This document shows positions 8,034 through 64,000 of a DNA stretch of 64,000 bases, piece by piece. The position numbers were made by a program, and so were the translations under genes. Location of the stretch: positions 21,142,001 to 21,206,000 of the forward strand of contig NW_027362774.1 in NCBI RefSeq assembly GCF_046119375.1, read 5' to 3'. The DNA is from Phyllobates terribilis. Lineage: Eukaryota. Position 1 is the first letter of the stretch; the number at the start of each line of letters is the position of its first letter. Below the pieces are notes generated by a model. It was not told the origin of the DNA. It saw only the letters and a program-made list of their open reading frames with translations, and made no database searches.

Positions 8034-21167
<13,134 letters not shown>

Positions 21168-21840: not shown

Positions 21841-24800
21841 GTATGAATGGAAGTAGTGCTGAGGGGGCGTCCGGGTGCTGAGCGCAATCCACAGGCCAGC
21901 AGCCCCCTATGATGCACCCGCCTAGGGTCTACCAGGGCACGGTGGTGTCCTCCAGGGTCGGGTAGGGTCTACCAGGGCACAGTGGGGTCCGCCAGGGCCA
22001 CCTAGGGTCTACCAGGGCACGGTGGTGTCCTCCAGGGCTGGGTAGGGTCTACCAGGGCACAGTGGTGTCCTCCAGGGTCGGGTAGGGTCTACCAGGGCAC
22101 AGTGGGGTCCGCCAGGGCCACCTAGGGTCTACCAGGGCACGGTGGTGTCCTCCAGGGCTGGGTAGGGTCTACCAGGGCACAGTGGTGTCCTCTAGGGTCT
22201 ACCAGGGCACAGTGGGGTCCGCCAGGGCCAGGTAGGGTCTACCAGGGCACAGTGGTGTCCTCCAGGGCCGCCTAGGGTCTACCAGGGCACGGTGGTGTCC
22301 TCCAGGGCCGGGTAGGGTCTACCAGGGCACGGTGGTGTCCTCCAGGGCCGGGTAGCGTCTACCAGGGCACGGTGGTGTCCTCCAGGGCCGGGTAAGGTCT
22401 ACCAGGGCACGGTGGTGTCCTCCAGGGCCGGGTAGGGTCTACCAGGGCACGGTGGTGTCCTCCAGGGCCGGGTAGGGTCTACCAGGGCACGGTGGTGTCC
22501 TCCAGGGCTGGGTAGGGTCTACCAGGGCACGGTGGTGTCCTCCAGGGCCGGGTAGGGTCTACCAGGGCACGGTGGTGTCCTTCAGGGCCGGGTAGGGTCT
22601 GCCAGGGCACGGTGGTGTCCTCCAGGGCCGGGTAGGGTCTGCCAGGGCACGGTGGTGTCCTCCAGGGCCGGGTAGGGTCTGCCAGGGCACGGTGGTGTCT
22701 TCTAGGGCCGGGTAGGGTCTGCCACGGCATGGTGGTGTCCTCCAGGGCCGGGTAGGGTCTGCCACGGCATGGTGGTGTCCTCCAGGGGCGGGTAGGGTCT
22801 GCCAGGGCACGGTGGGGTCCGCCAGGGCCAGGTAGGCTCTGCCAGGGCACGGTGGGGTCCGCCAGGGCCAGGTAGGCTCTGCCAGGGCACGGTGGGGTCC
22901 GCCAGGGCCTGGTAGGGTCCACTTACGATCTGCCTGGGCACGGTGGGGTCTGCCAGGGCCAGGTAGGCTCTGCCAGGGCACGGTGGGGTCCGCCAGGGCC
23001 AGGTAGGCTCTGCCAGGGCACGGTGGGGTCCGCCAGTGCCAGGTAGGCTCTGCCAGGGCACGGTGGGGTCCGCCAGGGCCAGGTAGGCTCTGCCAGGGCA
23101 CGGTGGGGTCCGCCAGGGCCGGGTAGGGTCCACTTATGATCTGCCTGGGCACGGTGGGGTCTGCCAGGGCACGGTGGGGTCCGCCAGGGCCGGGTAGGGT
23201 CCGTCTAGGCTCTGCCAGGGCATGGTGGGGTCCGCCAGGGCCTGGTAGGCTCTGCCAGGGCACGGTGGGGTCCGCCAGGGCTGGGTAGGCTCTGCCAGGG
23301 CACATTGTGGTTTGCCAAGGCACGGTGTGGTCTGCCAGGGCACTGTGGAGTCCTCGGTCGGCCAGGGCCGGGTAGGGTCTGCCAGGGCATGGTGGGGTCC
23401 ACCAACGCCGGGTAGGGTTAGCCACAATGGTGCCATTTGCAATCAGTTTTTTTTCCCATACCTGTGCCAGGATCCATCCTCCTCATCCTCACATCAGTGC
23501 TGCAGGCCGTCCGTCCCCCTATCCTCAACCAACAGTCACTGAAAATGTGAATCTTCCGCCTTTAGGGAAGGTGAAGTTGCTGTTTGAAGACGGCCTGGGA
23601 CTGGTAGACTTCCATCTGTCGCACCGTGCCTGCGTCCTGTACATCTCGGAGTCTGACCTGGTGTCCGGGAACGCTTTCAAGAGAAGACTTGTGCGATTTC
23701 GAAAGGTAAATCATTGCGGCTATGTGCTCACAGAGCAGATTCCACACTGATTCTGCCGTGCTGTCCACGTGTATCGATGTGGGTAAATCTGTGTGTGGAT
23801 CCGCAGCAGAAATCAGGCCTGGATCTATGTCCTGGAATCTCTTGCAGATCTGTCACACACTATGGCCTCGACACATGTTGCACTGGCAACACTCGCTACG
23901 TTGCAGCACAATACAAGTGGGTTGCACGACAAGGTGCTCCGACTGCAACTTGCTTATCATGGTTGCAGCAGCCTCTGGGTCACAATGTGAACTCCATTCG
24001 TTTGTATTGTGCTGCGATGTAGCAGCGACACGTAGGAGCAAGCTTTGCCGGTGCAACTAGGGTTCTGGCCAAAGTCGCCTTTGCATTTTTATCACAAAAC
24101 CTGATGGATTTCCTAGTCCCTGCAAAATCCATGATATTCCCGAAGTCTCACACGTTGCTTATTTTTTTTACTTGTTAATTATGTCAGATTTTACCCATTC
24201 TACTGAGTGAAGAAAAATCTGCAGCAAAAAATGCATGCAAAAAACTCTGCGTTTTTCCTGCCAAGAGATGCAGAAATTTCTGCAGCAAATACTTGATGTG
24301 CGCATATACCCTTACACTCCTGTCTAATTAAAAAAAGAAAATATATTTATAAATATATATCTCTATATCTCTATAGATAGATAGATAGATATAGTACAGA
24401 CCAAAAGTTTGGACACACCTTCTCATTTAAAGATTTTTCTGTATTTTCATAGACTATGAAAATTGTACATTCACACTGAAGGCATCAAAACTATGAATTA
24501 ACACATGTGGAATTATATACTTAACAAAAAAGTGTGAAACAGCTGAAAATATGTCTTATATTCTAGGTTCTTCAAAGTAGCCACCTTTTTCTTTGATGAC
24601 TGCTCTGCACACTCTTGGCATTCTCTTGATGAGCTTCAAGAGGTAGTCACCGGAAATGGTCTTCACTTCACAGGTGTGCCCTGTCAGGTTTAATAAGTGG
24701 GATTTCTTGCCTTATAAATGGGGTTGGGACCATCAGTTGTGTTGTGCAGAAGTCAGGTGGATACACAGCTGATAGTCCTACTGAATAGACTGTTAGAATT

Positions 24801-27518
24801 TGTATTATGAAAAGAAAAAGCAGCTAAGTAAAGAAAAACGAGTGGCCATCATTACTTTAAGAAATGAAGGTCAGTCAGTCTGAAAAATTGGGAAAACTTT
24901 GAAAGTGTCCCCAAGTGCAGTTGCAAAAACCATCAAGCGCTACAAAGAAACTGGCTCACATGAGGACCGCCCCAGGAAAGGAAGACCAAGAGTCACCTCT
25001 GCTTCTGAGGATAAGTTTATCCGAGTCACCAGCCTCAGAAATCGCTGGTTAACAGCAGCTCAGATTAGAGACCAGGTCAATGCCACACAGAGTTCTAGCA
25101 GCAGACACATCTCTACAACAACTGTTAAGAGGAGACTTTGTGCAGCAGGCCTTCATGGTAAAATAGCTGCTAGGAAACCACTGCTAAGGACAGGCAACAA
25201 GCAGGAGAGACTTGTTTGGGCTAAAGAACACAAGGAATGGACATTAGACCAGTGGAAATCTGTGCTTTGGTCTGATGAGTCCAAATTTGAGATCTTTGGT
25301 TCCAACCACCGTGTCTTTGTGTGACGCAGAAAAGGTGAACGGATGGACTCTACATGCCTGGTTCCCACCGTGAAGCATGGAGGAGGAGGTGTGATGGTGT
25401 GGGGTTGCTTTGCTGGTGACACTGTTGGGGATTTATTCAAAATTGAAGGCATCCTGAACCAGCATGGCTACCACAGCATCTTGCAGCGGCATGCTATTCC
25501 ATCCGGTTTGCGTTTAGTTGGACCATCATTTATTTTCCAACAGGACAATGACCCCAAACACACCTCCAGGCTGTGTAAGGGCTATTTGACCAAGAAGGAG
25601 AATGATGGGGGGCTACGCCAGATGACCTGGCCTCCAGTCACCAGACCTGAACCCAATCGAGATGGTTTGGGGTGAGCTGGACCGCAGAGTGAAGGCAAAA
25701 GGGCCAACAAGTGCTAAGCATCTCTGGGAACTCCTTCGAGATTGTTGGAAGACCATTTCCGGTGACTACCTCTTGAAGCTCATCAAGAGAATGCCAAGAG
25801 TGTGCAAAGCAGTCATCAAAGCAAAAGGTGGCTACTTTGAAGATCCTAGAATATAAGACATATTTTCAGTTGTTTCACACTTTTTTGTTAAGTATATAAT
25901 TCCACATGTGTTAATTCATAGTTTTGATGCCTTCAGTGTGAATGTACAATATTCATAGTCATGAAAATACAGAAAATTCTTTAAATGAGGTGTGTCCAAA
26001 CTTTTGGTCTGTACTGTATATAATATATATTTATTTATTTAATGATAAAAAAATATTTATAATATATATTTCAAAATATATTTTTTATTTCAATAAATAT
26101 ATTTTATTAATAATAATCAATATATATGCATTTTATTTTTTTTAAAGGCCAGCAACTTAAAGGGCGTTATTATAGCAGAGAGGACGCGGCTTAGTGATCA
26201 GTACTTTCCTCCGGTGCAGAACTTTGTGGCACTGGAACTCGGCATGGCGTTACTCCCCGTTACTAGTCAGAGCGAAGCGGCTCAGCTAATATGTCATTTA
26301 GTAAGTAAATAGGTATTATAATAGCATTATAATTATTATTATATTTTTTATTTTATATTTTTTTTTTTATTAATAAATTATATTTTTATTTTATTTTTTC
26401 ATTATTATCATACCACTCATTGCAGGAGGGTAAAGTGCATCTCACTTTTCAGAATAAGCTGTCATATGTGTGTACATGACAAATAACACTATTTCTGGTC
26501 ATTATATGGCTTGTATCCTGGATTTTTCACCAGTTTTCCCCTCTGCAGCCTCTATCTCTAAATTTCAGTTGTCTCTGAGCTAGTGGGTGCAGACTAGCTG
26601 CCATGATGTCTCCCATGCACAGACATGAGGGATTCCTGCTCTTATTTCTCTATAGTAACAAGCAGCAGCAGCATGGAGGATATAATACAGCAGTGTTGCT
26701 GTGAATCCAGACCTGGGTTGACAAACACTAGAAAGCAGCAGCCCCATCTGTGTGTCTATTCCACTCCTGCTTCTCCCTTTATTCTATCTATCTATCTATC
26801 TATCTATCTTAGTTGTAATCTGATCCCTCAGTGACCTTGAACAGGAGATATTTTTAGCAATATTATAAGTAAATGATAAGTTCAAACTAGAGAAGAAGTG
26901 GAGAAAGAAGCATATTTCTCTGGTAAGAAATACTACAACTTTTCTTTTATTTGCATGTAATATTAATTTATGCAAAGTTTGTCCAATTAATTACTAACCT
27001 TCTGCCACCACTAGAGGGAGCTTGCAGTATACGGATTTTTAAAGCAATGGCAGCTGTAGAAATCTGCATGCGGTGAGCTCCCCCTAATGGTAGGAAAGTG
27101 GTAAAAAGAGCAACGAATTAAGAGTCACATTCGGACGACTTGATCTCATTTTATTATTAGGCTTAGGGCCTTTCTTTTATAGTTGAAGTGCATTAAATAC
27201 CAAATCACATAAAAATGTCATGAAATGTAGCTAAAACCAAAATTAAATATCCTCCCCTATCCCCCCCCACAGGTGCAAGAGCGAAGCAGAGAAGGGGGCA
27301 GCAACCCTTTTATTGGCAAGAAGCGCGGCCATCTTTGTGAAGCCGGCGTCCTGCAGACCGTACAGAGGATCCCGGGGGTCGGCCGGGTGAAGGCTCTTCA
27401 GCTCCTTCAGTATTTTCCCAGCATTCAGCAACTTTCCAACGCGTCTCTGAAGGAGCTGGAGGCCGTGGTGGGACGAGGAATCGCCAGCAACATCCATTCT
27501 TTCTTTACACAAACTTGA
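21729..27518 (+). CDS. FAAP24: FAAP24 (Fanconi anemia core complex-associated protein 24), complete, 216 aa
   Basis: Exons 21729-21840, 23566-23705, 26148-26300 and 27273-27518 give 651 nt in frame. ERCC4-like region (GHVIGSEKWRG, FEDGLG.VDF) and HhH motif (QRIPGVGRVKA...FPSIQQLSNAS) match recalled human FAAP24. Confidence 0.95.
21920..23420. repeat. 40-bp G-rich VNTR (~37 units) in FAAP24 intron 2
   Basis: Unit TAGGGTCTACCAGGGCACGGTGGTGTCCTCCAGGGCCGGG, drifting along the array. Confidence 0.95.
23566..23705 (+). CDS. FAAP24: FAAP24 exon 3 (GKVKLLFEDGLGLVDFHLSHRACVLYISESDLVSGNAFKRRLVRFRK)
   Basis: TTTAG/GTAAAT boundaries, conserved peptide. Confidence 0.93.
24394..26016 (+). mobile_element. 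DD38E Tc1-like element in FAAP24 intron 3 (left boundary of the triplication)
   Basis: TIRs present; ORF pieces 24899-25324, 25343-25675 and 25662-25856, with stops and a frameshift. Confidence 0.95.
26148..26300 (+). CDS. FAAP24: FAAP24 exon 4, copy 1 (ASNLKGVIIAERTRLSDQYFPPVQNFVALELGMALLPV...)
   Basis: AAAG/GTAAGT boundaries, 153 nt, phase 0-0. Confidence 0.92.
27273..27518 (+). CDS. FAAP24: FAAP24 terminal exon, copy 1 (HhH domain)
   Basis: CACAG acceptor, 81 codons plus TGA. Confidence 0.93.
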   Translation: MQERSREGGSNPFIGKKRGHLCEAGVLQTVQRIPGVGRVKALQLLQYFPSIQQLSNASLKELEAVVGRGIASNIHSFFTQT

Positions 27519-27717
27519 TAACACTAATGTATCTGCAGGAAAAACTCAGGGTGCATAAGAAGAAGAGGGCAGCAAGCTGTGCCATTCACACACTAGTCCC
27601 CTTAGGGGACTGATTTCCCCTGCGGAGATCCAGCTAGTGCAGGAAGCAATGGTGCATCGCTTATATTTTTTTTTAACCCAATCCAAGCACTTGACCCTTT
27701 GCTTTAAAAAAAAAAAA

Positions 27718-27968
27718 AAAAAAAACTGCATTACTCACCCTCCCCTGGTCCAGCTCTCTGTCTCTGCCGCTGCCCCCGGTGTCTGTTTTTATATTCTGCA
27801 TCCAATCAGTGGCTCGTACTGTCAGCTTGGGCAGAGCCGCTGAGATTTATTGATTGGCTGCAGAGCTGTCGACGTGACTTCAGCACTGCAAAAGCAATGA
27901 CAGACACCGGGGGTCAGCAGCGGAGACTCGGCGCTGGACCTGGGAATAGTGAGTAATGCAGTTTTTTT
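27718..27968. mobile_element. Hairpin MITE downstream of the FAAP24 stop (repeated in copies 2 and 3)
   Basis: AAAAACTGCATTACTCAC / GTGAGTAATGCAGTTTTT ends and nested complementary arms. Confidence 0.7.
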
Positions 27969-28276
27969 AGTAGGGGAGTTTCAAAACCAGAAATCCCCTT
28001 TAAGTAATCCATTGATTTATATAATGTGGTGTAACCCCCCCCCCCCTACTGAAGTGTATGCTGCTGCCCCCTGGTAGTAATGTGCTATAACCTTATGGAT
28101 AAAGACAGCGGTGAGGTGAGAGATGCTGCGGGCATGATGTTGTGGGGTAGATTATATAGGAAGCATAATAAATAGCAAGCCGCCAACAGACGTCACCTCT
28201 CAAGATTGGAAGGGGGGGATGCCGGATGACCCCTCTAAATTAGTAACAAAAAAAACCACCAAACTTTGCACTATGT

Positions 28277-28294
28277 AATAAATGTCATTTTATT
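28277..28294. terminator. Face-to-face polyadenylation signals (AATAAA on plus, AATAAA on minus); also at 32660-32677 and 37045-37062
   Basis: Sequence AATAAA-TGTCAT-TTTATT between the convergent stop codons. Confidence 0.45.
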
Positions 28295-29441
28295 CCTCAT
28301 GGACAGATTATTTCCTGCCGCCCGTCAGACATTATTTCCGCAATCGCCATTATATTTCTGATAAAACTCAATATTGCACAATGTACGGTAATCTCAACCA
28401 GTAAAAGTGGATATTTGCTGCCGGCACCAGGGTCCTTTTATTAAATGGCAATCTCTTGCTTTTCTGTGGCGGCGATCAGGAAACCTGCGTCCTCTTAAAT
28501 ACACTTAAATATATACAATCTTATATAAACCCTAAAAATGAAGAAACAAATCTATATTTAACAGATATTTACAAATCTTTCCCTTATAATAGGGGAATCG
28601 TGGTGTCGGAGATCAGCAGAAAACAACATTTTTAACCTTTGTTCCTTTTTAAATCGCATCTACGAAGAGAAAGGATAAAAAAAATGCAATAATCACACGG
28701 AGAAATGACAGCGATCTGCACCCGGCTCTTGATACTACAACTCCCAGCATGGAGGAACCGGAGACGTGCGGACCACCGACCTACAGTAACCATCGTGTGC
28801 AGATAATAATACCGTATAAACAACACATATAGAAAGAAAACATCCATGCGATACAATACGTCCAGCTTTGTACCAGATAGGGGTTGTAGTCACTGACTGC
28901 AGTGAACACCGTCTATAGCAGCATCTGGAGGAAAGTTGGGGTAGTCTATCCCGTCTACGTCTTTGGTCCATGTGTCAAAATAATAGCAATATTATACGGA
29001 AAAAAAATATATAGAATTTCCTACTTACGCGATTTTTTTTTTTATTATTTCGATTTTTTTTTTTTTGATTTTTTTTTTAATATAAAAAAAAATTAAGTTG
29101 TGAAGAAGGATGCACTACCTGACTATGACCTGCAGGTGGCAGCATTTAACCTACTAAAAGTTTTCTTGCTCTCCTGTAATATTTCCCCAGCGTTTTCTGC
29201 AGTAATCGGCAAGTTAAAAATGGCTACTAATTTCATTGCAATCTAAAAACAGATAGCGAAAAAATTAAGAAAAACGGTATTTTTTTTTTAACTATTTAAG
29301 AACAGATCCAACTTTACCAATATGGAGGAGAAGGTAAAAAAAAAAAAATCCTGTTCAATGAGAAAATGTATAAATTAATTGTCACAGCTCTCGGGATTGT
29401 CACAGTTGTCTCTAGGAGTCTCTTTTTGGGACAGGAGGGGG

Positions 29442-29696
29442 TCAGTACATGGCACTGTCACATGCCCGGTTGTCGTAGGGTGAGAGGAAAAGTTTGCTGC
29501 TTTGGGGCTTGGCGGTGGCGGGGGAAGCGAGGCACAAGGTGCTTGCTGCTTTCTGGCGGTTTCTGAATCCCCAGCTGAGGAAGGATAATTTTTTTGTTGC
29601 TTTTTGAATTTTGGGGTTCTTGTCATCGTCCATTGTTAGACAGATCAGGGAGTAGGTCTTCTGCATCCCGGCTGAGTATGTGGCGCTCTTGTTGTG
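29442..29696 (-). other. RHPN2: Duplicated RHPN2 terminal exon, copy 1
   Basis: Same translation and acceptor. Confidence 0.9.
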
Positions 29697-29894
29697 CTGT
29701 ATAAGCAAAGAGAAGAATGGGATATTATCTCCAATTATAGAAGTCATAGACAGCTGTCCGAGATCGGAACGCGGTGCACGGATCTGACGGCGGCGCTCCC
29801 GACCTGCGTTCCAATGGTTAACAATACAACACAATTAAAAAGAAGAAGAAATTAGGTTGTACAATTTAAAAAAAAGTGTATATATATATATACA

Positions 29895-30401
29895 CAGTAC
29901 AGACCACCTTCTCATTTAAAGATTTTTCTGTATTTTCATGACTATGAAAATTGTACATTCACACTGAAGGCATCAAAACTATGAATTACCACATGTGGAA
30001 TTATATACTTAACAAAAAAGTGTGAAACAACTGAAAATATGTCTTATATTCTAGGTTCTTCAAAGTAGCCACCTTTTGCTTTGATGACTGCTTTGCACAC
30101 TCTTGGCATTCTCTTGATGAGCTTCAAGAGGTAGTCACCGGAAATGGTCTTCACTTCACAGGTGTGACCTGTCAGGTTTAATAAGTGTGCAAAGCAGTCA
30201 TCAATGCAAAAGGTGGCTACTTTGAAGAACCTAGAATATAAGACATATTTTCAGCTGTTTCACTTTTTTTTGTTAAGTATATAATTCCACATGTGGTAAT
30301 TCATAGTTTTGATGCCTTCAGTGTGAATGTACAATTTTCATACTGGAGAAAATACGGAAAATTCTTTAAATGAGGTGTGTCCAAACTTTTGGTCTGTACT
30401 G
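29895..30401 (+). mobile_element. Internally deleted (507 bp) hybrid DD38E element, triplication junction 1
   Basis: Left TIR plus ~30 bp fused at AGTG (30184-30187) to the distal right TIR. Confidence 0.92.
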
Positions 30402-30536
30402 TATATATATATATTTATTTATTTATTTAATGATAAAAAAATATTTATAATATATATTTCAAAATATATTTTTTATTTCAATAAATATATTTTATTAATA
30501 ATAATCAATATATATGCATTTTATTTTTTTTTAAAG

Positions 30537-30689
30537 GCCAGCAACTTAAAGGGCGTTATTATAGCAGAGAGGACGCGGCTTAGTGATCAGTACTTTCCTC
30601 CGGTGCAGAACTTTGTGGCGCTGGAACTCGGCATGGCGTTACTCCCCGTTACTAGTCAGAGCGAAGCGGCTCAGCTAATATGTCATTTA
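30537..30689 (+). other. FAAP24: Duplicated FAAP24 exon 4, copy 2
   Basis: Matches copy 1 except synonymous GCA>GCG at 30620; splice sites intact. Confidence 0.9.
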
Positions 30690-31656
30690 GTAAGTAAATA
30701 GGTCATAAAGCATTATAATTATTATTATATTTTTTATTTTATAATTTTTTTTTTTTATTAATAAATTATATTTTTACTTTATTTTTTCATTATTATCATA
30801 CCACTCATTGCAGGAGGGTAAAGTGCATCTCACTTTTCAGAATAAGCTGTCATATGTGTGTACATGACAAATAACACTATTTCTGGTCATTATATGGCTT
30901 GTATCCTGGATTTTTCACCAGTTTTCCCCTCTGCAGCCTCTATCTCTAAATTTCAGTTGTCTCTGAGCTAGTGGGTGCAGACTAGCTGCCATGATGTCTC
31001 CCATGCACAGACATGAGGGATTCCTGCTCTTATTTCTCTATAGTAACAAGCAGCAGCAGCATGGAGGATATAATACAGCAGTGTTGCTGTGAATCCAGAC
31101 CTGGGTTGACAAACACTAGAAAGCAGCAGCCCCATCTGTGTGTCTATTCCACTCCTGCTTCTCCCTTTATTCTATCTATCTATCTATCTATCTTAGTTGT
31201 AATCTGATCCCTCAGTGACCTTGAACAGGAGATATTTTTAGCAATATTATAAGTAAATGATAAGTTCAAACTAGAGAAGAAGTGGAGAAAGAAGCATATT
31301 TCTCTGGTAAGAAATACTACAACTTTTCTTTTATTTGCATGTAATATTAATTTATGCAAAGTTTGTCCAATTAATTACTAACCTTCTGCCACCACTAGAG
31401 GGAGCTTGCAGTATACGGATTTTTAAAGCAATGGCAGCTGTAGAAATCTGCATGCGGTGAGCTCCCCCTAATGGTAGGAAAGTGGTAAAAAGAGCAACGA
31501 ATTAAGAGTCACATTCGGACGACTTGATCTCATTTTATTATTAGGCTTAGGGCCTTTCTTTTATAGTTGAAGTGCATTAAATACCAAATCACATAAAAAT
31601 GTCATGAAATGTAGCTAAAACCAAAATTAAATATCCTCCCCTATCCCCCCCCACAG

Positions 31657-31902
31657 GTGCAAGAGCGAAGCAGAGAAGGGGGCAGCAACCCTTTTATTGG
31701 CAAGAAGCGCGGCCATCTTTGTGAAGCCGGCGTCCTGCAGACCGTACAGAGGATCCCGGGGGTCGGCCGGGTGAAGGCTCTTCAGCTCCTTCAGTATTTT
31801 CCCAGCATTCAGCAACTTTCCAACGCGTCTCTGAAGGAGCTGGAGGCCGTGGTGGGACGAGGAATCGCCAGCAACATCCATTCTTTCTTTACACAAACTT
31901 GA
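31657..31902 (+). other. FAAP24: Duplicated FAAP24 terminal exon, copy 2
   Basis: Same 81-aa translation, acceptor intact. Confidence 0.9.
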
Positions 31903-33824
31903 TAACACTAATGTATCTGCAGGAAAAACTCAGGGTGCATAAGAAGAAGAGGGCAGCAAGCTGTGCCATTCACACACTAGTCCCCTTAGGGGACTGATTT
32001 CCCCTGCGGAGATCCAGCTAGTGCAGGAAGCAATGGTGCATCGCTTATATTTTTTTTTAACCCAATCCAAGCACTTGACCCTTTGCTTTAAAAAAAAAAA
32101 AAAAAAAAACTGCATTACTCACCCTCCCCTGGTCCAGCTCTCTGTCTCTGCCGCTGCCCCCGGTGTCTGTTTTTATATTCTGCATCCAATCAGTGGCTCG
32201 TACTGTCAGCTTGGGCAGAGCCGCTGAGATTTATTGATTGGCTGCAGAGCTGTCGACGTGACTTCAGCACTGCAAAAGCAATGACAGACACCGGGGGTCA
32301 GCAGCGGAGACTCGGCGCTGGACCTGGGAATAGTGAGTAATGCAGTTTTTTTAGTAGGGGAGTTTCAAAACCAGAAATCCCCTTTAAGTAATCCATTGAT
32401 TTATATAATGTGGTGTAACCCCCCCCCCCTACTGAAGTGTATGCTGCTGCCCCCTGGTAGTAATGTGCTATAACCTTATGGATAAAGACAGCGGTGAGGT
32501 GAGAGATGCTGCGGGCATGATGTTGTGGGGTAGATTATATAGGAAGCATAATAAATAGCAAGCCGCCAACAGACGTCACCTCTCAAGATTGGAAGGGGGG
32601 GATGCCGGATGACCCCTCTAAATTAGTAACAAAAAAAACCACCAAACTTTGCACTATGTAATAAATGTCATTTTATTCCTCATGGACAGATTATTTCCTG
32701 CCGCCCGTCAGACATTATTTCCGCAATCGCCATTATATTTCTGATAAAACTCAATATTGCACAATGTACGGTAATCTCAACCAGTAAAAGTGGATATTTG
32801 CTGCCGGCACCAGGGTCCTTTTATTAAATGGCAATCTCTTGCTTTTCTGTGGCGGCGATCAGGAAACCTGCGTCCTCTTAAATACACTTAAATATATACA
32901 ATCTTATATAAACCCTAAAAATGAAGAAACAAATCTATATTTAACAGATATTTACAAATCTTTCCCTTATAATAGGGGAATCGTGGTGTCGGAGATCAGC
33001 AGAAAACAACATTTTTAACCTTTGTTCCTTTTTAAATCGCATCTACGAAGAGAAAGGATAAAAAAAATGCAATAATCACACGGAGAAATGACAGCGATCT
33101 GCACCCGGCTCTTGATACTACAACTCCCAGCATGGAGGAACCGGAGACGTGCGGACCACCGACCTACAGTAACCATCGTGTGCAGATAATAATACCGTAT
33201 AAACAACACATATAGAAAGAAAACATCCATGCGATACAATACGTCCAGCTTTGTACCAGATAGGGGTTGTAGTCACTGACTGCAGTGAACACCGTCTATA
33301 GCAGCATCTGGAGGAAAGTTGGGGTAGTCTATCCCGTCTACGTCTTTGGTCCATGTGTCAAAATAATAGCAATATTATACGGAAAAAAAATATATAGAAT
33401 TTCCTACTTACGCGATTTTTTTTTTTATTATTTCGATTTTTTTTTTTTTGATTTTTTTTTTAATATAAAAAAAAATTAAGTTGTGAAGAAGGATGCACTA
33501 CCTGACTATGACCTGCAGGTGGCAGCATTTAACCTACTAAAAGTTTTCTTGCTCTCCTGTAATATTTCCCCAGCGTTTTCTGCAGTAATCGGCAAGTTAA
33601 AAATGGCTACTAATTTCATTGCAATCTAAAAACAGATAGCGAAAAAATTAAGAAAAACGGTATTTTTTTTTTAACTATTTAAGAACAGATCCAACTTTAC
33701 CAATATGGAGGAGAAGGTAAAAAAAAAAAAATCCTGTTCAATGAGAAAATGTATAAATTAATTGTCACAGCTCTCGGGATTGTCACAGTTGTCTCTAGGA
33801 GTCTCTTTTTGGGACAGGAGGGGG

Positions 33825-34079
33825 TCAGTACATGGCACTGTCACATGCCCGGTTGTCGTAGGGTGAGAGGAAAAGTTTGCTGCTTTGGGGCTTGGCGGTG
33901 GCGGGGGAAGCGAGGCACAAGGTGCTTGCTGCTTTCTGGCGGTTTCTGAATCCCCAGCTGAGGAAGGATAATTTTTTTGTTGCTTTTTGAATTTTGGGGT
34001 TCTTGTCATCGTCCATTGTTAGACAGATCAGGGAGTAGGTCTTCTGCATCCCGGCTGAGTATGTGGCGCTCTTGTTGTG
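33825..34079 (-). other. RHPN2: Duplicated RHPN2 terminal exon, copy 2
   Basis: Same translation and acceptor as the copy at 38210-38464. Confidence 0.88.
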
Positions 34080-34277
34080 CTGTATAAGCAAAGAGAAGAA
34101 TGGGATATTATCTCCAATTATAGAAGTCATAGACAGCTGTCCGAGATCGGAACGCGGTGCACGGATCTGACGGCGGCGCTCCCGACCTGCGTTCCAATGG
34201 TTAACAATACAACACAATTAAAAAGAAGAAGAAATTAGGTTGTACAATTTAAAAAAAAGTGTATATATATATATACA

Positions 34278-34784
34278 CAGTACAGACCACCTTCTCATTT
34301 AAAGATTTTTCTGTATTTTCATGACTATGAAAATTGTACATTCACACTGAAGGCATCAAAACTATGAATTACCACATGTGGAATTATATACTTAACAAAA
34401 AAGTGTGAAACAACTGAAAATATGTCTTATATTCTAGGTTCTTCAAAGTAGCCACCTTTTGCTTTGATGACTGCTTTGCACACTCTTGGCATTCTCTTGA
34501 TGAGCTTCAAGAGGTAGTCACCGGAAATGGTCTTCACTTCACAGGTGTGACCTGTCAGGTTTAATAAGTGTGCAAAGCAGTCATCAATGCAAAAGGTGGC
34601 TACTTTGAAGAACCTAGAATATAAGACATATTTTCAGCTGTTTCACTTTTTTTTGTTAAGTATATAATTCCACATGTGGTAATTCATAGTTTTGATGCCT
34701 TCAGTGTGAATGTACAATTTTCATACTGGAGAAAATACGGAAAATTCTTTAAATGAGGTGTGTCCAAACTTTTGGTCTGTACTG
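34278..34784 (+). mobile_element. Internally deleted hybrid DD38E element, triplication junction 2
   Basis: Same as 29895-30401; junction AGTG at 34567-34570. Confidence 0.92.
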
Positions 34785-34919
34785 TATATATATATATTTA
34801 TTTATTTATTTAATGATAAAAAAATATTTATAATATATATTTCAAAATATATTTTTTATTTCAATAAATATATTTTATTAATAATAATCAATATATATGC
34901 ATTTTATTTTTTTTTAAAG

Positions 34920-35072
34920 GCCAGCAACTTAAAGGGCGTTATTATAGCAGAGAGGACGCGGCTTAGTGATCAGTACTTTCCTCCGGTGCAGAACTTTGTG
35001 GCGCTGGAACTCGGCATGGCGTTACTCCCCGTTACTAGTCAGAGCGAAGCGGCTCAGCTAATATGTCATTTA
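34920..35072 (+). other. FAAP24: Duplicated FAAP24 exon 4, copy 3
   Basis: Same as copy 2 (GCG at 35003). Confidence 0.88.
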
Positions 35073-36039
35073 GTAAGTAAATAGGTCATAAAGCATTATA
35101 ATTATTATTATATTTTTTATTTTATAATTTTTTTTTTTTATTAATAAATTATATTTTTACTTTATTTTTTCATTATTATCATACCACTCATTGCAGGAGG
35201 GTAAAGTGCATCTCACTTTTCAGAATAAGCTGTCATATGTGTGTACATGACAAATAACACTATTTCTGGTCATTATATGGCTTGTATCCTGGATTTTTCA
35301 CCAGTTTTCCCCTCTGCAGCCTCTATCTCTAAATTTCAGTTGTCTCTGAGCTAGTGGGTGCAGACTAGCTGCCATGATGTCTCCCATGCACAGACATGAG
35401 GGATTCCTGCTCTTATTTCTCTATAGTAACAAGCAGCAGCAGCATGGAGGATATAATACAGCAGTGTTGCTGTGAATCCAGACCTGGGTTGACAAACACT
35501 AGAAAGCAGCAGCCCCATCTGTGTGTCTATTCCACTCCTGCTTCTCCCTTTATTCTATCTATCTATCTATCTATCTTAGTTGTAATCTGATCCCTCAGTG
35601 ACCTTGAACAGGAGATATTTTTAGCAATATTATAAGTAAATGATAAGTTCAAACTAGAGAAGAAGTGGAGAAAGAAGCATATTTCTCTGGTAAGAAATAC
35701 TACAACTTTTCTTTTATTTGCATGTAATATTAATTTATGCAAAGTTTGTCCAATTAATTACTAACCTTCTGCCACCACTAGAGGGAGCTTGCAGTATACG
35801 GATTTTTAAAGCAATGGCAGCTGTAGAAATCTGCATGCGGTGAGCTCCCCCTAATGGTAGGAAAGTGGTAAAAAGAGCAACGAATTAAGAGTCACATTCG
35901 GACGACTTGATCTCATTTTATTATTAGGCTTAGGGCCTTTCTTTTATAGTTGAAGTGCATTAAATACCAAATCACATAAAAATGTCATGAAATGTAGCTA
36001 AAACCAAAATTAAATATCCTCCCCTATCCCCCCCCACAG

Positions 36040-36285
36040 GTGCAAGAGCGAAGCAGAGAAGGGGGCAGCAACCCTTTTATTGGCAAGAAGCGCGGCCATC
36101 TTTGTGAAGCCGGCGTCCTGCAGACCGTACAGAGGATCCCGGGGGTCGGCCGGGTGAAGGCTCTTCAGCTCCTTCAGTATTTTCCCAGCATTCAGCAACT
36201 TTCCAACGCGTCTCTGAAGGAGCTGGAGGCCGTGGTGGGACGAGGAATCGCCAGCAACATCCATTCTTTCTTTACACAAACTTGA
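36040..36285 (+). other. FAAP24: Duplicated FAAP24 terminal exon, copy 3
   Basis: Same 81-aa translation. Confidence 0.88.
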
Positions 36286-38209
36286 TAACACTAATGTATC
36301 TGCAGGAAAAACTCAGGGTGCATAAGAAGAAGAGGGCAGCAAGCTGTGCCATTCACACACTAGTCCCCTTAGGGGACTGATTTCCCCTGCGGAGATCCAG
36401 CTAGTGCAGGAAGCAATGGTGCATCGCTTATATTTTTTTTTAACCCAATCCAAGCACTTGACCCTTTGCTTTAAAAAAAAAAAAAAAAAAAACTGCATTA
36501 CTCACCCTCCCCTGGTCCAGCTCTCTGTCTCTGCCGCTGCCCCCGGTGTCTGTTTTTATATTCTGCATCCAATCAGTGGCTCGTACTGTCAGCTTGGGCA
36601 GAGCCGCTGAGATTTATTGATTGGCTGCAGAGCTGTCGACGTGACTTCAGCACTGCAAAAGCAATGACAGACACCGGGGGTCAGCAGCGGAGACTCGGCG
36701 CTGGACCTGGGAATAGTGAGTAATGCAGTTTTTTTAGTAGGGGAGTTTCAAAACCAGAAATCCCCTTTAAGTAATCCATTGATTTATATAATGTGGTGTA
36801 ACCCCCCCCCCCCCTACTGAAGTGTATGCTGCTGCCCCCTGGTAGTAATGTGCTATAACCTTATGGATAAAGACAGCGGTGAGGTGAGAGATGCTGCGGG
36901 CATGATGTTGTGGGGTAGATTATATAGGAAGCATAATAAATAGCAAGCCGCCAACAGACGTCACCTCTCAAGATTGGAAGGGGGGGATGCCGGATGACCC
37001 CTCTAAATTAGTAACAAAAAAAACCACCAAACTTTGCACTATGTAATAAATGTCATTTTATTCCTCATGGACAGATTATTTCCTGCCGCCCGTCAGACAT
37101 TATTTCCGCAATCGCCATTATATTTCTGATAAAACTCAATATTGCACAATGTACGGTAATCTCAACCAGTAAAAGTGGATATTTGCTGCCGGCACCAGGG
37201 TCCTTTTATTAAATGGCAATCTCTTGCTTTTCTGTGGCGGCGATCAGGAAACCTGCGTCCTCTTAAATACACTTAAATATATACAATCTTATATAAACCC
37301 TAAAAATGAAGAAACAAATCTATATTTAACAGATATTTACAAATCTTTCCCTTATAATAGGGGAATCGTGGTGTCGGAGATCAGCAGAAAACAACATTTT
37401 TAACCTTTGTTCCTTTTTAAATCGCATCTACGAAGAGAAAGGATAAAAAAAATGCAATAATCACACGGAGAAATGACAGCGATCTGCACCCGGCTCTTGA
37501 TACTACAACTCCCAGCATGGAGGAACCGGAGACGTGCGGACCACCGACCTACAGTAACCATCGTGTGCAGATAATAATACCGTATAAACAACACATATAG
37601 AAAGAAAACATCCATGCGATACAATACGTCCAGCTTTGTACCAGATAGGGGTTGTAGTCACTGACTGCAGTGAACACCGTCTATAGCAGCATCTGGAGGA
37701 AAGTTGGGGTAGTCTATCCCGTCTACGTCTTTGGTCCATGTGTCAAAATAATAGCAATATTATACGGAAAAAAAATATATAGAATTTCCTACTTACGCGA
37801 TTTTTTTTTTTATTATTTCGATTTTTTTTTTTTTGATTTTTTTTTTAATATAAAAAAAAATTAAGTTGTGAAGAAGGATGCACTACCTGACTATGACCTG
37901 CAGGTGGCAGCATTTAACCTACTAAAAGTTTTCTTGCTCTCCTGTAATATTTCCCCAGCGTTTTCTGCAGTAATCGGCAAGTTAAAAATGGCTACTAATT
38001 TCATTGCAATCTAAAAACAGATAGCGAAAAAATTAAGAAAAACGGTATTTTTTTTTTAACTATTTAAGAACAGATCCAACTTTACCAATATGGAGGAGAA
38101 GGTAAAAAAAAAAAAATCCTGTTCAATGAGAAAATGTATAAATTAATTGTCACAGCTCTCGGGATTGTCACAGTTGTCTCTAGGAGTCTCTTTTTGGGAC
38201 AGGAGGGGG

Positions 38210-38464
38210 TCAGTACATGGCACTGTCACATGCCCGGTTGTCGTAGGGTGAGAGGAAAAGTTTGCTGCTTTGGGGCTTGGCGGTGGCGGGGGAAGCGAGG
38301 CACAAGGTGCTTGCTGCTTTCTGGCGGTTTCTGAATCCCCAGCTGAGGAAGGATAATTTTTTTGTTGCTTTTTGAATTTTGGGGTTCTTGTCATCGTCCA
38401 TTGTTAGACAGATCAGGGAGTAGGTCTTCTGCATCCCGGCTGAGTATGTGGCGCTCTTGTTGTG
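38210..38464 (-). CDS. RHPN2: RHPN2 terminal coding exon (proximal copy, copy 3)
   Basis: ACAG acceptor, HNKSATY...DSAMY-stop. Confidence 0.92.
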   Translation of the reverse strand, partial: HNKSATYSAGMQKTYSLICLTMDDDKNPKIQKATKKLSFLSWGFRNRQKAASTLCLASPATAKPQSSKLFLSPYDNRACDSAMY

Positions 38465-41400
38465 CTGTATAAGCAAAGAGAAGAATGGGATATTATCTCC
38501 AATTATAGAAGTCATAGACAGCTGTCCGAGATCGGAACGCGGTGCACGGATCTGACGGCGGCGCTCCCGACCTGCGTTCCAATGGTTAACAATACAACAC
38601 AATTAAAAAGAAGAAGAAATTAGGTTGTACAATTTAAAAAAAAGTGTATATATATATATACACAGTACAGACCACCTTCTCATTTAAAGATTTTTCTGTA
38701 TTTTCATGACTATGAAAATTGTACATTCACACTGAAGGCATCAAAACTATGAATTACCACATGTGGAATTATATACTTAACAAAAAAGTATGAAACAACT
38801 GAAAATATGTCTTATATTCTAGGTTCTTCAAAGTAGCCACCTTTTGCTTTGATGACTGCTTTGCACACTCTTGGCATTCTCTTCATGAGCTTCAAGAGGT
38901 AGTCACCAGAAATGGTTTTCACTTCACAGGTGTGCCCTGTCAGGTTTAATAAGTGGGATTTCTTCCTCTATAAATGGGGTTGGGACCATCAGTTGTTGTG
39001 TTGTGCAGAAGTCTGGTGGATACACAGCTGATAGTCCTACTGAATAGACTGTTAGAATTTGTATTATGGCAAGAAAAAAGCAAAGTAAAGAAAAACGAGT
39101 GGCCATCATTAAGAAATGAAGGTCAGTCAGTCTGAAAAATTGGGAAAACTTTGAAAGTGTCTCCAAGTGCAGTTGCAAAAACCATCAAGTGCTACAAAGA
39201 AACTGGCTCACATGAGGACCGCCCCAGGAAAGGAAGACCAAGAGTCACCTCTGCTTCTGAGGATAAGTTTATCCGAGTCACCAGCCTCAGAAATCGCAGG
39301 TTAACAGCAGCTCAGATTAGAGACCAGGTCAATGCCACACAGAGTTCTAGCAGCAGACACATCTCTTCAACAACTGTTAAGAGGAGACTTTGTGCAGCAG
39401 GCCTTCATGGTAAAATAGCTGCTAGGAAACCACTGCTAAGGACAGGCAACAAGCAGAAGAGACTTGTTTGGGCTAAAGAACACAAGGAATGGACATTAGA
39501 CCAGTGGAAATCTGTGCTTTGGTCTGATGAGTCCAAATTTGAGATCTTTGGTTCCAACCACCGTGTCTTTGTGCGACGCAGAAAAGGTGAACGGATGGAC
39601 TCTACATGCCTGGTTCCCACCGTGAAGCATGGAGGAGGAGGTGTGATGGTGTGGGGGGCTTTGCTGGTGACACTGTTGGGGATTTATTCAAAATTGAAGG
39701 CGTACTGAACCAGCATGGCTACCACAGCATCTTGCAGCGGCATGCTATTTCATCCGGTTTGCGTTTAGTTGGACCATCATTCATTTTTCAACAGGACAAT
39801 GACCCCAAACACACCTCCAGGCTGTGTAAGGGCTATTTGACCAAGAAGAAGAGTGATGGGGTGCTACGCCAGATGACCTGGCCTCCACAGTCACCAGACC
39901 TGAACCCAATCGAGATGGTTTGGGGTGAGCTGGACCACAGAGTGAAGGCAAAAGGGCCAACAAGTGCTAAGCATCTCTGGGAACTCCTTCAAGATTGTTG
40001 GAAGACCATTTCCGGTGACTACCTCTTGAAGCTCATCAAGAGAATGCCAAGAGTGTGCAAAGCAGTCATCAAAGCAAAAGGTGGCTACTTTGAAGAACCT
40101 AGAATATAAGACATATTTTCAGTTGTTTCACACTTTTTTGTTAAGTATATAATTCTACATGTGTTAATTCATAGTTTTGATGCCTTCAGTGTGAATGTAC
40201 AATTTTCATAGTCATGAAAATACAGAAAAATCTTTAAATGAGAAGGTGTGTCCAAACTTTTGGTCTGTACTGTATATATATATATATATATATATATTAT
40301 ATTTATTCCACGGCGATAATTTAAAAACTAATTATTATTATTATAGCGCCATTTATTCCATGGCGCTTTTTCTTCCAAAAAACAGCGCCATTCCTGTCCA
40401 TCGGTTGCAGCTTTAATGGAGCAGACCCATCTCATAGATACACGTGGTCCTGTCGGTGTGCATGGATTCTACTGCTAATATCAGGGATCAGCCATAATAT
40501 TTCCGCGTGCACTCACCATACTGGACGTCTGGTCCTGGATACTGATCACCTTGATCTCTTTCCCTTCTTCCCTTATTCCGTTCAGCATGCCCATGACTTC
40601 ATTTATCGAGCACCATTTGCAATCTTTGCCTTCCACCGCCACGATGTAATCTCCTTCCTTTACGCCTTCTCGCTGGAACGTGAAAAAGGCAAAATATTAC
40701 TAAATCTACTAAGCAAAAAAAAAAAAAAATAGGATTTGGTAGTTATTGGCTAAATCCGCCAATTTCCACTGACCCCACTCGATGGACGAAAACGTGCGGC
40801 ATTGACCCTTTCTCATTGCTGATTTAGTTCCCTGCAAATTCTAATTATTCTGTCTTCTGTAATGTAAAGTTGCTCTCAATGCACCGACTTACTAATGATC
40901 TTATATACTTTTACAGCAGCAGTGTAAAACATGGGGGAGAAGTTATGTAGAGGCAATCAGTTTCCTAGGAAAGGAGTGCACGCTCGCAAGCTCTTTGTTA
41001 TAAGCCCCTGTGTTCCTCCCAAGCTGTACAACACACAGTTAGACTTTGGATCGACCATGTTCCTGGTCCGAACTGTCAATCTTCAGGAGTGTACCGCCCC
41101 TGGCAAGCAGAGAAGCGGTGCGCTCCTGAAGGAAGAACAGTAGACATCCCCTTTTAATGCATTCTGCCGTCACAATCTTCCCTTTGTACTTACTGCGGCC
41201 GGACAGAGCGGATCCAGCGAGGTTATCTGTACGGGACAGTCTCCCTTTAAGATGAACCCTATCTCTCCATCTTCTAGAGTCAGGAGGACCTTTCTTGGCG
41301 CCGACCACCTCTGTTTTGCTGAGAATACTGACAGCGGACCCTAAAAAAAAAAAAAAAAAAAAAAAAAAAGGTGCAAAGTGAGAAAACCTCGGACTTTCTC

Positions 41401-44400
41401 CACTTAGTTTGCACAGTCGGAGTATTGTTTTTGCAGCAGGAATGTGGATGTCACGGTCTGGTATTATGTGAACATAGGAAGAAGTTATCTGAAGATCAGG
41501 GGATAGGGGCGCTGGGGGCACTTTCTGCTTCTGTAGTTTATGCACTGTGACGAGAGGTTGGTAAGGACAATGCCAGTCTGCTGCTCGTAAGCCCTTTACA
41601 TTTGAGGAATAATTGAGATTATTGTTCACATCATATAAAAGTATCTATGGATCTACAGAGACAACACAGGCATTTTACAGCTTAAATCTCTGTGTGGCGT
41701 GGCGGTACGTACCAGTCGTTGAAAGAAATCAATCACTTTCACCCTGGAGAGCGGAGGAGGAATCATCTCTGCTTTGTACTCTGTTTTACCTGGGGAGGAT
41801 CAGAAGACTTAATTGTGTATACATTCCAGCAAAACATGAAAAATACGCCCCGCTTATCTGTGTAATCTGCCCGTCCAGAGACAGGTCGCACATTCTCCGG
41901 CACAGCTGCACTTTACAGTCTGAGGGATACTGAGATACCATCTTTTTTTTTTTTATTTATTTAGCTTTTAGTTACTTATTATTATAAATTTTATTATNNN
42001 NNNNNNNNNNNNNNNNNNNNNNNNNNNNNNNNNNNNNNNNNNNNNNNNNNNNNNNNNNNNNNNNNNNNNNNNNNNNNNNNNNNNNNNNNNNNNNNNNNNN
42101 NNNNNNNNNNNNNNNNNNNNNNNNNNNNNNNNNNNNNNNNNNNNNNNNNNNNNNNNNNNNNNNNNNNNNNNNNNNNNNNNNNNNNNNNNNNNNNNTTCTT
42201 TCCGCCCTTTTTTAATTTCCATATTTAAAAAGCCATTTTGGGGGTACATATAATGAACTAACCGTTTAGATTCCGCGATCAGCACTGACTGTGGCATCTA
42301 AAGGGGTTATATGGCTAGATTTGGAGTTAGCAATGGGGCCAATTGCTGGAAAGGTACTAAGGACCTTTTGAGGTCCATGAACCTTTTAGAAACCATCTTT
42401 CCCCTCTAGCACCAATGAAATGCAGTAGGAGTCCAACCTGCTCTTCCCAATTATAAATTCTAGGACTAGTAATTTAGCAGTAACATTCTCATTTTCCTCA
42501 CACTTACAGACTATTTCGGGGGCCACCAAAATGCCGAGGAACTCTTCTTCTTTTTTGTAATAGGAGTCTTTCAGCAGCGCCCTCTTGTGGAAAGCGGACA
42601 GTATCTCCTGCAGGATATCGATCTGCTTGAGTTGGCTGCACAGATTCGATAACCTCAGGGCTTCTTCGTGACACATGATTGCTTTGGATAAATGCGCCTT
42701 TCCTACGGATGCACGAGACAAAGAAAAAAAAAGAAAACAACGCTCAAGAAACACAATAATTTGTATGAGAAGAGGCTGAGACGCGACACGGCTGTATACA
42801 CAATGCACAATGGAAGCTGGGTGAGGACTGGCAGACGGTCACGACGTTTATTGACCATTTTACAGGGATGTTTTTCTATTGTCCCCGAGTACAGAGGAAT
42901 GTGAACTATGTCCTGTGTAGCCGGGTGCGGCCAGGAGCGAGGGTGGTGCCAACAAGTGTTATGGAACTTTACTGTAACTTTACAACGTGGTGCATGGCCT
43001 GGACGATATCTCCATATCACATACAAATACTTGTCCGACAGGACACCGTGTCACCGACGTGTGATCTCCTCAACAAGAGCCTGAGTGCCACATGAAAGGC
43101 TTATATTGAGTTTATCCCAACTTCACATTTTGCTGAGAAGCTAAGAATAAAAAACCCATCTGTCTATCATTATCTTTCACATTATTATACTTCAGAGCTG
43201 CACTCACTATTCTGCTAGTGCAGTCACTGTGTACATACAATACATTACTGATCCTGAGTTACATCCTGTATTCTACCCCAGAGCTGCACTCACTATTCTG
43301 CTGGTGGAGTCACTATGTACATACATTACATTACTGATCCTGAGTTACATCCTGTATTATACTCCAGAGCTGCACTCACTATTCTGCTGGTGCAGTCACT
43401 GTGTACATACAATACATTACTGATCCTGAGTTACATCCTGTATTCTACCCCAGAGCTGCACTCACTATTCTGCTGGTGGAGTCACTATGTACATACATTA
43501 CATTACTGATCCTGAGTTACATCCTGTATTATACTCCAGAGCTGCACTCACTATTCTGCTGGTGCAGTCACTGTGTACATACAATACATTACTGATCCTG
43601 AGTTACATCCTGTATTCTACCCCAGAGCTGCACTCACTATTCTGCTGGTGGAGTCACTATGTACATACATTACATTACTGATCCTGAGTTACATTCTGTA
43701 TTATACTCCACAGCTGCACTCACTATTCTGCTGGTGCAGTCACTGTGTACATACATTACATTACTGATCCTGAGTTATATCCTGTATTATACTCCAGAGC
43801 TGCACTCACTATTCTGCTGGTGGAGTCACTATGTACATACATTACATTACTGATCCTGAGTTACATCCTGTATTATACTCCAGAGCTGCACTCACTATTC
43901 TGCTTGTGCAGTCACTGTGTACATACATTACATTACTGATCCTGAGTTACATCCTGTATTCTACCCCAGAGCTGCACTCACTATTCTGCTGGTGCAGTCA
44001 CTGTGTACATACATTACATTACTGATCCTGAGTTACATCCTGTATTATACTCCAGAGCTGCACTCACTATTCTGCTGGTGGAGTCACTATGTACATACAT
44101 TACATTACTGATCCTGAGTTACATCCTGTATTATACTCCAGAGCTGCACTCACTATTCTGCTTGTGCAGTCACTGTGTACATACATTACATTACTTATCC
44201 TGAGTTACATCCTGTATTATACTCCAGAGCTGCACTCACTATTCTGCTGGTGCAGTCACTGTGTACATACATTACATTACTGACCCTGAGTTACATCCTG
44301 TATTATACTCCAGAGCTGCACTCACTATTCTGCTGGTGCAGTCACTGTGTACATACATTACATTACTGATCCTGAGTTACATCTGTATTATACTCCAGAG

Positions 44401-63189: not shown

Positions 63190-64000
63190 GCTATAATACA
63201 GTATGGAGGGGTGCATTATACTATATGGAGGACCATGGGGGTGCATTATACTGTATGGAGGACCATGGGGGTGCATTATGCTGTATGGAGAACCTTGGGG
63301 GTGCATTATATTGTATAGAGGACCACGAAGGTGCATTATACTGTATGGAGGACCTTGGAGGAACATTATACTGTATAAAGGACCATGGAGGTGCATTATG
63401 CTGTATGGAGGACCTTGGGGGTGCATTATACTGTATGAAGGACTATGGAGGTGCATTATGCTGTATGGAGAACCTTGGGGGTGCATTATATTGTATAGAG
63501 GACCACGAAGGTGCATTATACTGTATGGAGGACCTTGGAGGAACATTATACTGTATAAAGGACCATGGAGGTGCATTATGCTGTATGGAGGACCTTGGGG
63601 GTGCATTATACTGTATGAAGGACTATGGAGGTGCATTATGCTGTATGGAGGACCTTGGAGTTGCATTATGGAGGACCATGGAGGTACATTATACTGTATG
63701 GAGGACCATGGGGGTGCATTATACTGTATGGAGGACCATGGGGTGCATTATACTGTATGGAGGGCATTGGGGTGTATTATACTGTTTTGAGGACCATGGG
63801 GGTGCATTATACTGTATGAAGGACCATGGGGAGTGCATTATACTGTATGGAGGACTATGGAGAGAGCATTATACTGTATGGAGGACCATGGGGAAAGCAT
63901 TTTATTATATGGAGGACCATGGGTAGTGCATTTTATTACATGGAGGACCATGGGGAGTGCATTATATTCTATGGAGGACCATGGGGAGAGCATTATATTC
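63190..64000. repeat. 30-bp satellite with a 180-bp higher-order duplication, running off the window
   Basis: GTGCATTATACTGTATGGAGGACCATGGGG units. Confidence 0.93.

Follow-up and report, generated by a model that had tools for sequence, protein, structure and literature searches.

The window, by which we mean the whole 64-kb stretch of DNA analysed, contains the facing 3' ends of two genes, FAAP24 on the plus strand and RHPN2 on the minus strand. Self-comparison of the window revealed that these gene ends lie in a tandem triplication with a period of ~4383 bp. Exon bounds of the plus strand gene were taken from RNA contigs together with splice sites read from the sequence, and the exons were searched separately against references. 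The public run X16 behaves as RNA, and one of its contigs splices from 26300 to 27273 across a GT..AG intron, while the 5' part of this contig matches 23672-23701. The helix-hairpin-helix domain of the last plus strand exon matches solved FAAP24 chains (E 6e-26), and an open reading frame on the minus strand (40484-40642) matches the PDZ domain of rhophilin-2 (E 8e-8), thus identifying the two genes. Each repeat unit carries the last two exons of FAAP24 and the last exon of RHPN2. The exons are arranged as follows:

Ends at ~23705, plus strand: upstream exon of FAAP24, to the left of transposon copy A
26148-26300, plus strand: penultimate exon of FAAP24 in unit 1, with copies starting at ~30537 and ~34920
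27273-27693, plus strand: last exon of FAAP24, with the helix-hairpin-helix domain and the stop codon at 27516-27518; identical copies at 31657-32077 and 36040-36460
27735-29696, minus strand: last exon of RHPN2, coding tail and 3' UTR; identical copies end at ~34079 and ~38464
Starts at ~40517, minus strand: upstream exon of RHPN2, to the right of transposon copy B and joined to the last exon in an X16 contig

The array is bounded by two copies of one transposon family, termed A and B here. Copy A lies in the FAAP24 intron between the exons at ~23705 and ~26148, and copy B in the last intron of RHPN2. A reading made beforehand from the sequence alone had placed the two elements in introns of facing genes, and the splicing seen in X16 together with the two protein matches confirms this placement. 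The outermost exon copies adjoin the upstream exons, and both FAAP24 and RHPN2 therefore stay whole. Since one complete 3' end per gene is kept at the edges of the array, the extra exon copies are probably inert. The penultimate FAAP24 exon carries A at 26231 in unit 1, and in the other two units G occupies the corresponding positions (30620 and 35003), an apparently synonymous change (GCA versus GCG).

Five full-length copies of this Tc1-like transposon, each ~1.62 kb long (range 1610-1630 bp), are present in the window:

12210-13820, plus strand: copy C1, full-length Tc1-like
16234-17838, minus strand: copy C2, interrupted by an N run
24393-26016, plus strand: copy A, 1624 bp, full-length DD38E Tc1-like element in the FAAP24 intron, left boundary of the array
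38663-40272, plus strand: copy B, 1610 bp, full-length DD38E element that bounds the array on the right, in the last intron of RHPN2
55303-56932, plus strand: copy C5, full-length Tc1-like

The five copies share a pairwise identity of ~96%, and the transposase reading frame is broken in every one of them. In the longest open reading frame, that of C5, the catalytic triad shows 89 residues between the first and the second aspartate and 38 residues between the second aspartate and the glutamate, corresponding to DD38E, and Pfam matches to HTH_Tnp_Tc3_2 and DDE_3 were obtained. The spacing and the domain matches bear out the previous description of A and B as DD38E copies in the same orientation. 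The arms, i.e., the terminal inverted repeats, pair over ~260-274 bp, and TA adjoins most copy ends. The best protein relatives of the transposase are unnamed and Tc1-like records from fish and frogs with 88-91% identity. Judged by contig depth, the family is extremely abundant in the genome, and because of this abundance transposon contigs reach just ~60-90 nt.

Intruder (IT) elements of the DD38E type measure 1.5-1.7 kb, carry a single transposase gene between terminal inverted repeats that are short or long (100-272 bp), and use a TA target (PMC7731502). The window copies resemble them in their DD38E spacing, their length of 1.6 kb, their terminal repeats of ~260 bp and their TA sites (PMC7731502), and the fish and frog proteins related to their transposase (88-91% identity) are a further point of agreement. 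They differ in that the frames of all five copies are broken, and the match to Intruder is one of similarity and structure.

Two of the remaining copies show rearrangements of their own. The right arm of C1 (13680-13700) carries a 16-bp deletion in the terminal repeat and a 4-bp deletion at its extreme end, and such damage to terminal repeats is therefore common in this set of copies. In C2, an in-place inversion, as compared with the remainder of the copy, affects 29 bp around the transposase start codon (17432-17460), and the inverted segment is bounded by the short inverted repeat TTAG/CTAA. Five tandem arrays also lie in the window (9826-10620, 18350-20951, 21918-23425, 43183-45850 and 63202-63999), with periods of ~33, 31, 40 (GC-rich), 86 and 60 bp; the array with the 31-bp period has a strong GC skew.

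Copies A and B have the same (plus) orientation and are 96.5% identical over 1.6 kb. The triplication begins inside the right arm of A and ends inside the left arm of B, and comprises three units:

25799-30187, plus strand: repeat unit 1, which departs from units 2 and 3 only within the initial ~990 bp
30184-34570, plus strand: repeat unit 2, whose only difference from unit 3 is how long a C-run is (32418/36802-3)
34567-38955, plus strand: repeat unit 3, differing from units 1 and 2 at five positions only, at 38790-38935 in the inner left arm of B

A three-way alignment of the units contains 38 differing columns, which are unevenly spread. Unit 1 has 12 substitutions within 25820-25971, the inner right arm of A, and ~11 further events (6 substitutions and 5 indels) at 26022-26786, mostly in AT-rich microsatellites or an interspersed repeat. 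The repeated unique core of 3.1 kb (26787-29894 and its copies) is free of substitutions (0/3108), and no N run occurs inside the array. Contig depth across 26376-26957 and its copies in units 2 and 3 rises to several hundred, compared to ~12 in the adjoining unique DNA, and this segment is therefore another interspersed repeat inside the unit; a TCTA microsatellite (~26773-26817) lies within the same high-depth region.

At each of the two internal joints of the array sits a short derivative of the transposon, which we refer to as M:

29895-30401, plus strand: M1, 507-bp internally deleted element at the first internal joint
34278-34784, plus strand: M2, 100% identical to M1 over 507 bp
30184-30187, plus strand: AGTG, 4-bp microhomology at the deletion joint of M1

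M1 retains both terminal repeats and has lost the interior, including any transposase open reading frame. It folds into a near-perfect hairpin (DNA dG -214.7 kcal/mol, z -36.9), as expected of any deletion derivative with long repeats. Compared to the 1610 bp of B, ~1.1 kb (positions ~294-1406) with nearly the whole transposase gene is missing from M. At the corresponding sites B reads ...AATAAGTG followed by GGATT and A reads ...CAAGAGTG followed by TGCAAAG, and M reads AATAAGTGTGCAAAG. The joint of M is thus AATAAGTG/TGCAAAG, in which ...AAGTG as found in B and GAGTG... as found in A overlap in AGTG. The reported joint at this AGTG, with ~1.1 kb and nearly all of the transposase lost, is present in the sequence. 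By a rough estimate, a microhomology of at least 4 bp would occur by chance at ~1-2% of random joints. Both AGTG sites are found in all five full-length copies, and the deletion could therefore have formed within any single copy.

The tips of M carry markers of the two bounding copies. The left end shares with B a 14-bp deletion (CAGTACAGAC followed directly by CACCTTC) and the AATTACCAC variant (ACC), both absent from the other four full-length copies. The right end shares with A the sequence AAAATTCTTTAAATGAGGTG (ATT and a 3-bp deletion), neither feature of which is found in any other window copy. These markers are private as judged on the five window copies. The sequence-only reading had reported them, describing the right-hand marker as lacking AAG, and both reports hold, as does its statement that the flanks follow the same pattern: the sequences to either side of M are co-linear with those of the left end of B and the right end of A. 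With tips and flanks paralogous to B-left and A-right, the joint of the duplication therefore lies inside the transposon.

Owing to the deletion shared with B, the left terminal repeat of M lacks bases 11-24. We take it from general Tc1/mariner knowledge that this loss probably cripples transposase binding. It is consequently less probable that transposase broke the joint element, and the break needs some other cause; the deletion also casts doubt on M as a mobile lineage. Within the 64-kb window no copies with the joint of M were found beyond M1 and M2. An exact scan of metagenome contigs gave no match to the junction word, and likewise none to a control word from the full-length element. Exact-protein look-ups gave no match to the open reading frame running from the right end of M into unit 2, and the corresponding control at the right end of A gave no match either.

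The joint element was aligned against all five full-length copies and compared in four segments around the AGTG:

29895-30021, plus strand: outer left, 127 bp, 0 differences to B; the other copies show 1-2 substitutions and indels; contains the 14-bp deletion and ACC
30022-30183, plus strand: inner left, 162 bp, 5 differences to B, compared to 3-6 to each of the other copies
30188-30356, plus strand: inner right, 169 bp, 12-13 differences to A and 12-14 to every copy
30357-30401, plus strand: outer right, 45 bp, 0 differences to A; the other copies show 1 substitution and indels; contains ATT and the 3-bp deletion

The left arm of B has five features of its own. The outer two (the 14-bp deletion and ACC) recur in M and the inner three (at 38790, 38884 and 38908) do not. 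Similarly, the outer two of the four features specific to the right arm of A (ATT and the 3-bp deletion) are present in M and the inner two (at 25844 and 25951) are missing. Both inner segments are equidistant from all five full-length copies, and the inner right segment has ten variants found in no other window copy, including a cluster at 30343-30347. The boundaries at ~30021/30022 and ~30356/30357 are sharp and resemble the limits of tracts left by repair synthesis or conversion.

The inner-arm differences are strongly enriched over those of the core, with 12/169 and 5/162 compared to 0/3108 (Fisher p 2e-16 and 2e-7, respectively), and this clustering rules out point mutation since the duplication as their cause. 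Homogenisation between the two arms of M is ruled out as well, as its own arms are 94.8% alike, compared to 98.3% between the left arm of M and the reverse complement of the right arm of A. No donor for the inner segments was found among the seven copies compared. Two family contigs from other samples, reached via protein homologues and too few to define subfamilies, likewise lack the variants specific to M. Two positions in the right arm of M mirror variants elsewhere: 30296 is the mirror image of the ACC/GGT variant at 29988 in the left arms of B and M, and 30249 that of the CAGCTG variant in the left arm of A (24536). Such mirror-image variants may be polymorphisms that the family carries in both arms, or they may reflect conversion from one arm to the other, and since the right arm of M mirrors ACC of B-left as well as CAGCTG of A-left, they may simply be common family polymorphisms.

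At the level of the alignment, then, the tips and flanks of M are shown to descend from the left end of B and the right end of A. The inner 331 bp, the AGTG joint included, are shown by the same comparison to match neither parent better than they match unrelated copies. A clean fusion of the two parents at AGTG is therefore not demonstrated. The central 331 bp are either foreign or all that is left of arms once present in A and B. For the sequence-only reading this means that M as simply B(1-293) joined to A(1407-1624) is not supported, as the inner arms share none of the three inner variants of B or the two of A. Its arm-by-arm assignment of variants to the bounding copies is borne out at the tips and breaks down over two thirds of the element. 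Likewise, the idea of a transposon-bracketed amplification of gene ends stands with respect to the amplification and the transposon-derived joint, and fails with respect to a breakpoint between the parents preserved at AGTG. The earlier interpretation is thus partly supported, being right in outline and wrong in this key detail.

We favour, with moderate confidence, an explanation in which M is a non-autonomous, internally deleted DD38E (Intruder-type) member of the Tc1 group, positioned at the internal joints of a tandem duplication mediated by the transposon, the joint having been rebuilt by repair synthesis and the third unit added by unequal crossover. A and B would have acted as direct repeats, 1.6 kb long, 96.5% alike and 3.9 kb apart, which misaligned and recombined to give A-U-[transposon]-U-B, where U denotes the segment between the two elements. 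Alternatively, a broken end in A or B repaired on the other copy could have produced the same arrangement. Repair DNA synthesis, either during that event or subsequently, would then have rebuilt the joint element. New strands may first have been copied from the tips of this element and then from other members of the family, before annealing to each other at AGTG, with the loss of 1.1 kb. A single break in the joint element could in this way yield the mosaic, the deletion and the microhomology together. A later unequal crossover between two 4.4-kb units would have added the third unit, which would explain the identity of M1 with M2 and of unit 2 with unit 3. Counting against this explanation, a faithful original M combined with later overwriting of the inner arms of A and B would leave the same pattern.

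The individual steps have precedents. Gap repair proceeds by synthesis-dependent strand annealing, and ectopic sites can be copied (reviewed in PMC3878927, citing Nassif 1994, Rubin & Levy 1997 and Fischer 2003). Repeated invasion, the use of ectopic templates and closure by microhomology are established for transposon gap repair (PMC3878927 and works cited there), Tc1/mariner elements have been miniaturised between microhomologies (PMC3814204), and template switching at transposons with terminal inverted repeats is documented in animals (PMC8277862). In a variant of repair synthesis to which we give only a minor share of probability, duplication and mosaic were one event: a single germline episode of break-induced replication that would have started in the left arm of B, hopped through at least two dispersed copies, with one hop at AGTG, and landed on the right arm of A on the sister chromatid. 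If this is true, M has preserved a series of template switches between dispersed repeats of a vertebrate genome.

A simpler origin would be a one-step event, either a microhomology-mediated template switch or end joining, which joined B at position 293 to A at position 1407 at AGTG. M would then be parental throughout, and the inner arms of A and B would later have been converted from other family copies. The AGTG microhomology and the tip markers fit such a plain fusion, and so does the CAGCTG mirror (24536 versus 30249), provided that the original A had the variant in both arms. The fusion needs, however, two separate later conversions, one in A and one in B, each with its end just within the portion that M has kept, and 9 kb of repeated core would have had to remain without any substitution over that period. 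Moreover, the ~10 variants per 169 bp in the inner right segment amount to 2-3 times the divergence among full-length copies in that region, which would be unusual for the original arm of A. We hold it to be possible and rather doubtful. The centre of M with its joint could instead have been copied by gene conversion or gap repair from a pre-existing derivative of the 507-bp type elsewhere, i.e., a MITE-like lineage. One conversion tract of ~340 bp would account for both inner segments, the family is hugely abundant, and Tc1/mariner families do spawn such derivatives (PMC3814204). Nevertheless, the 64-kb window holds no further copy with the M joint, and an inner left segment near the consensus next to a strongly diverged inner right segment suggests two donors, making such a source improbable. 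Least probable by far is alternative transposition, of the reversed-ends or hybrid-element kind, using the right end of A and the left end of B. Two nearby elements of the same family can generate tandem direct duplications in this way in maize (PMC3744419). That process, however, duplicates DNA outside the element pair and leaves whole termini and a new target-site duplication (PMC3744419), whereas at this locus it is the DNA between A and B that is duplicated, 1.1 kb is absent from the joint element, the flanks of the joint are those of A and B themselves, and the left end of B lacks 14 bp of its terminal repeat. On the structure of array and joint, reversed-ends transposition is rejected.

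The number of units was also compared with public read data, which exist as Logan contigs only; contigs this short cannot give copy number. At the one clean marker site (26231/30620), contigs of X1, X5 and the RNA data carry the unit-1 letter A only. X1 shows a single length of the C-run, and its unit-1-type contig has a depth of 12.4, equal to the depth of the core contigs expected at three copies. Just 93% of the sampled words are contained in X1, and by our own count the shortfall approximates the M-specific and unit-2-specific words. The animals behind X1 and X5 either do not have the extra units or have units that are all alike, and the array may be polymorphic or its copy number over-called. 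Part of the array might accordingly be an assembly artefact, with fewer true units because a repeat loop was traversed once too often, or with edges and interior taken from different haplotypes. All of these X1 and X5 observations speak for an artefact, including the equal depth at edge and core, as does the identity of units 2 and 3 except for a homopolymer length. On the other hand, an assembler cannot invent joints that run from the end of U through M into the start of U, or the variants specific to M; the array is uninterrupted by N runs; and X1 is possibly not the assembled animal, in addition to the silence of Logan contigs on copy number. We consider an artefact unlikely, if slightly less so than a MITE-like donor.

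Compared with known systems, the locus resembles non-allelic homologous recombination (NAHR), template switching of the Alu/Alu type and FoSTeS/MMBIR in that two copies of one repeat family in the same orientation bracket the unit, the repeat at the joint has its ends from the two bracketing copies, and a short microhomology lies at the internal joint. It differs from NAHR in that M, with its 507 bp and 1.1 kb gone, is not a full-length in-register hybrid, so that a later deletion is required. It differs from FoSTeS/MMBIR or end joining in that the sequence flanking the joint of M does not match the two parents (5/162 versus B, 12/169 versus A). As in the miniaturisation of Tc1/mariner elements (Ozma to Gnome, Elf and Goblin; PMC3814204), M keeps both terminal repeats and has lost the transposase gene, and the missing stretch is bounded by short direct microhomologies that the full-length element also contains (PMC3814204); its microhomology, however, measures 4 bp compared to 6-8 bp in the Ozma derivatives (PMC3814204). 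From a MITE, M differs in that the two copies known both sit in one tandem array, with no evidence of past transposition. In addition, the 14-bp deletion in its left terminal repeat means that the terminal transposase-binding sequence is not intact at both ends.

Further parallels come from the repair of transposon breaks. Rubin & Levy reportedly described abortive gap repair in 1997 (cited in PMC3878927), to which the points just listed for miniaturised elements also apply, and Fischer, Wienholds & Plasterk are said to have shown in 2003 that repair from ectopic templates exchanges sequence between dispersed Tc1 copies in a nematode with active Tc1. Like the elements in the latter work, M is a mosaic whose tips match their own locus and whose interior resembles other family members. 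The nematode case differs in having been shown with active Tc1, whereas the case of M is inferred from one element.

The classes of mechanism involved are already well known, and M is a fresh example of an ordinary transposon-mediated duplication. For the analysis of such joints it carries a caution: a few markers shared at the tips of repeats do not locate a rearrangement joint, as two thirds of the supposed chimera match neither parent. The locus itself clearly illustrates, in a natural setting, two transposons in adjacent introns amplifying the 3' ends shared by a convergent gene pair (FAAP24, which acts in DNA repair, and RHPN2) and leaving both genes intact. If the donors of its inner segments were found, M would document that dispersed copies of the Tc1 type exchange sequence in a vertebrate genome.
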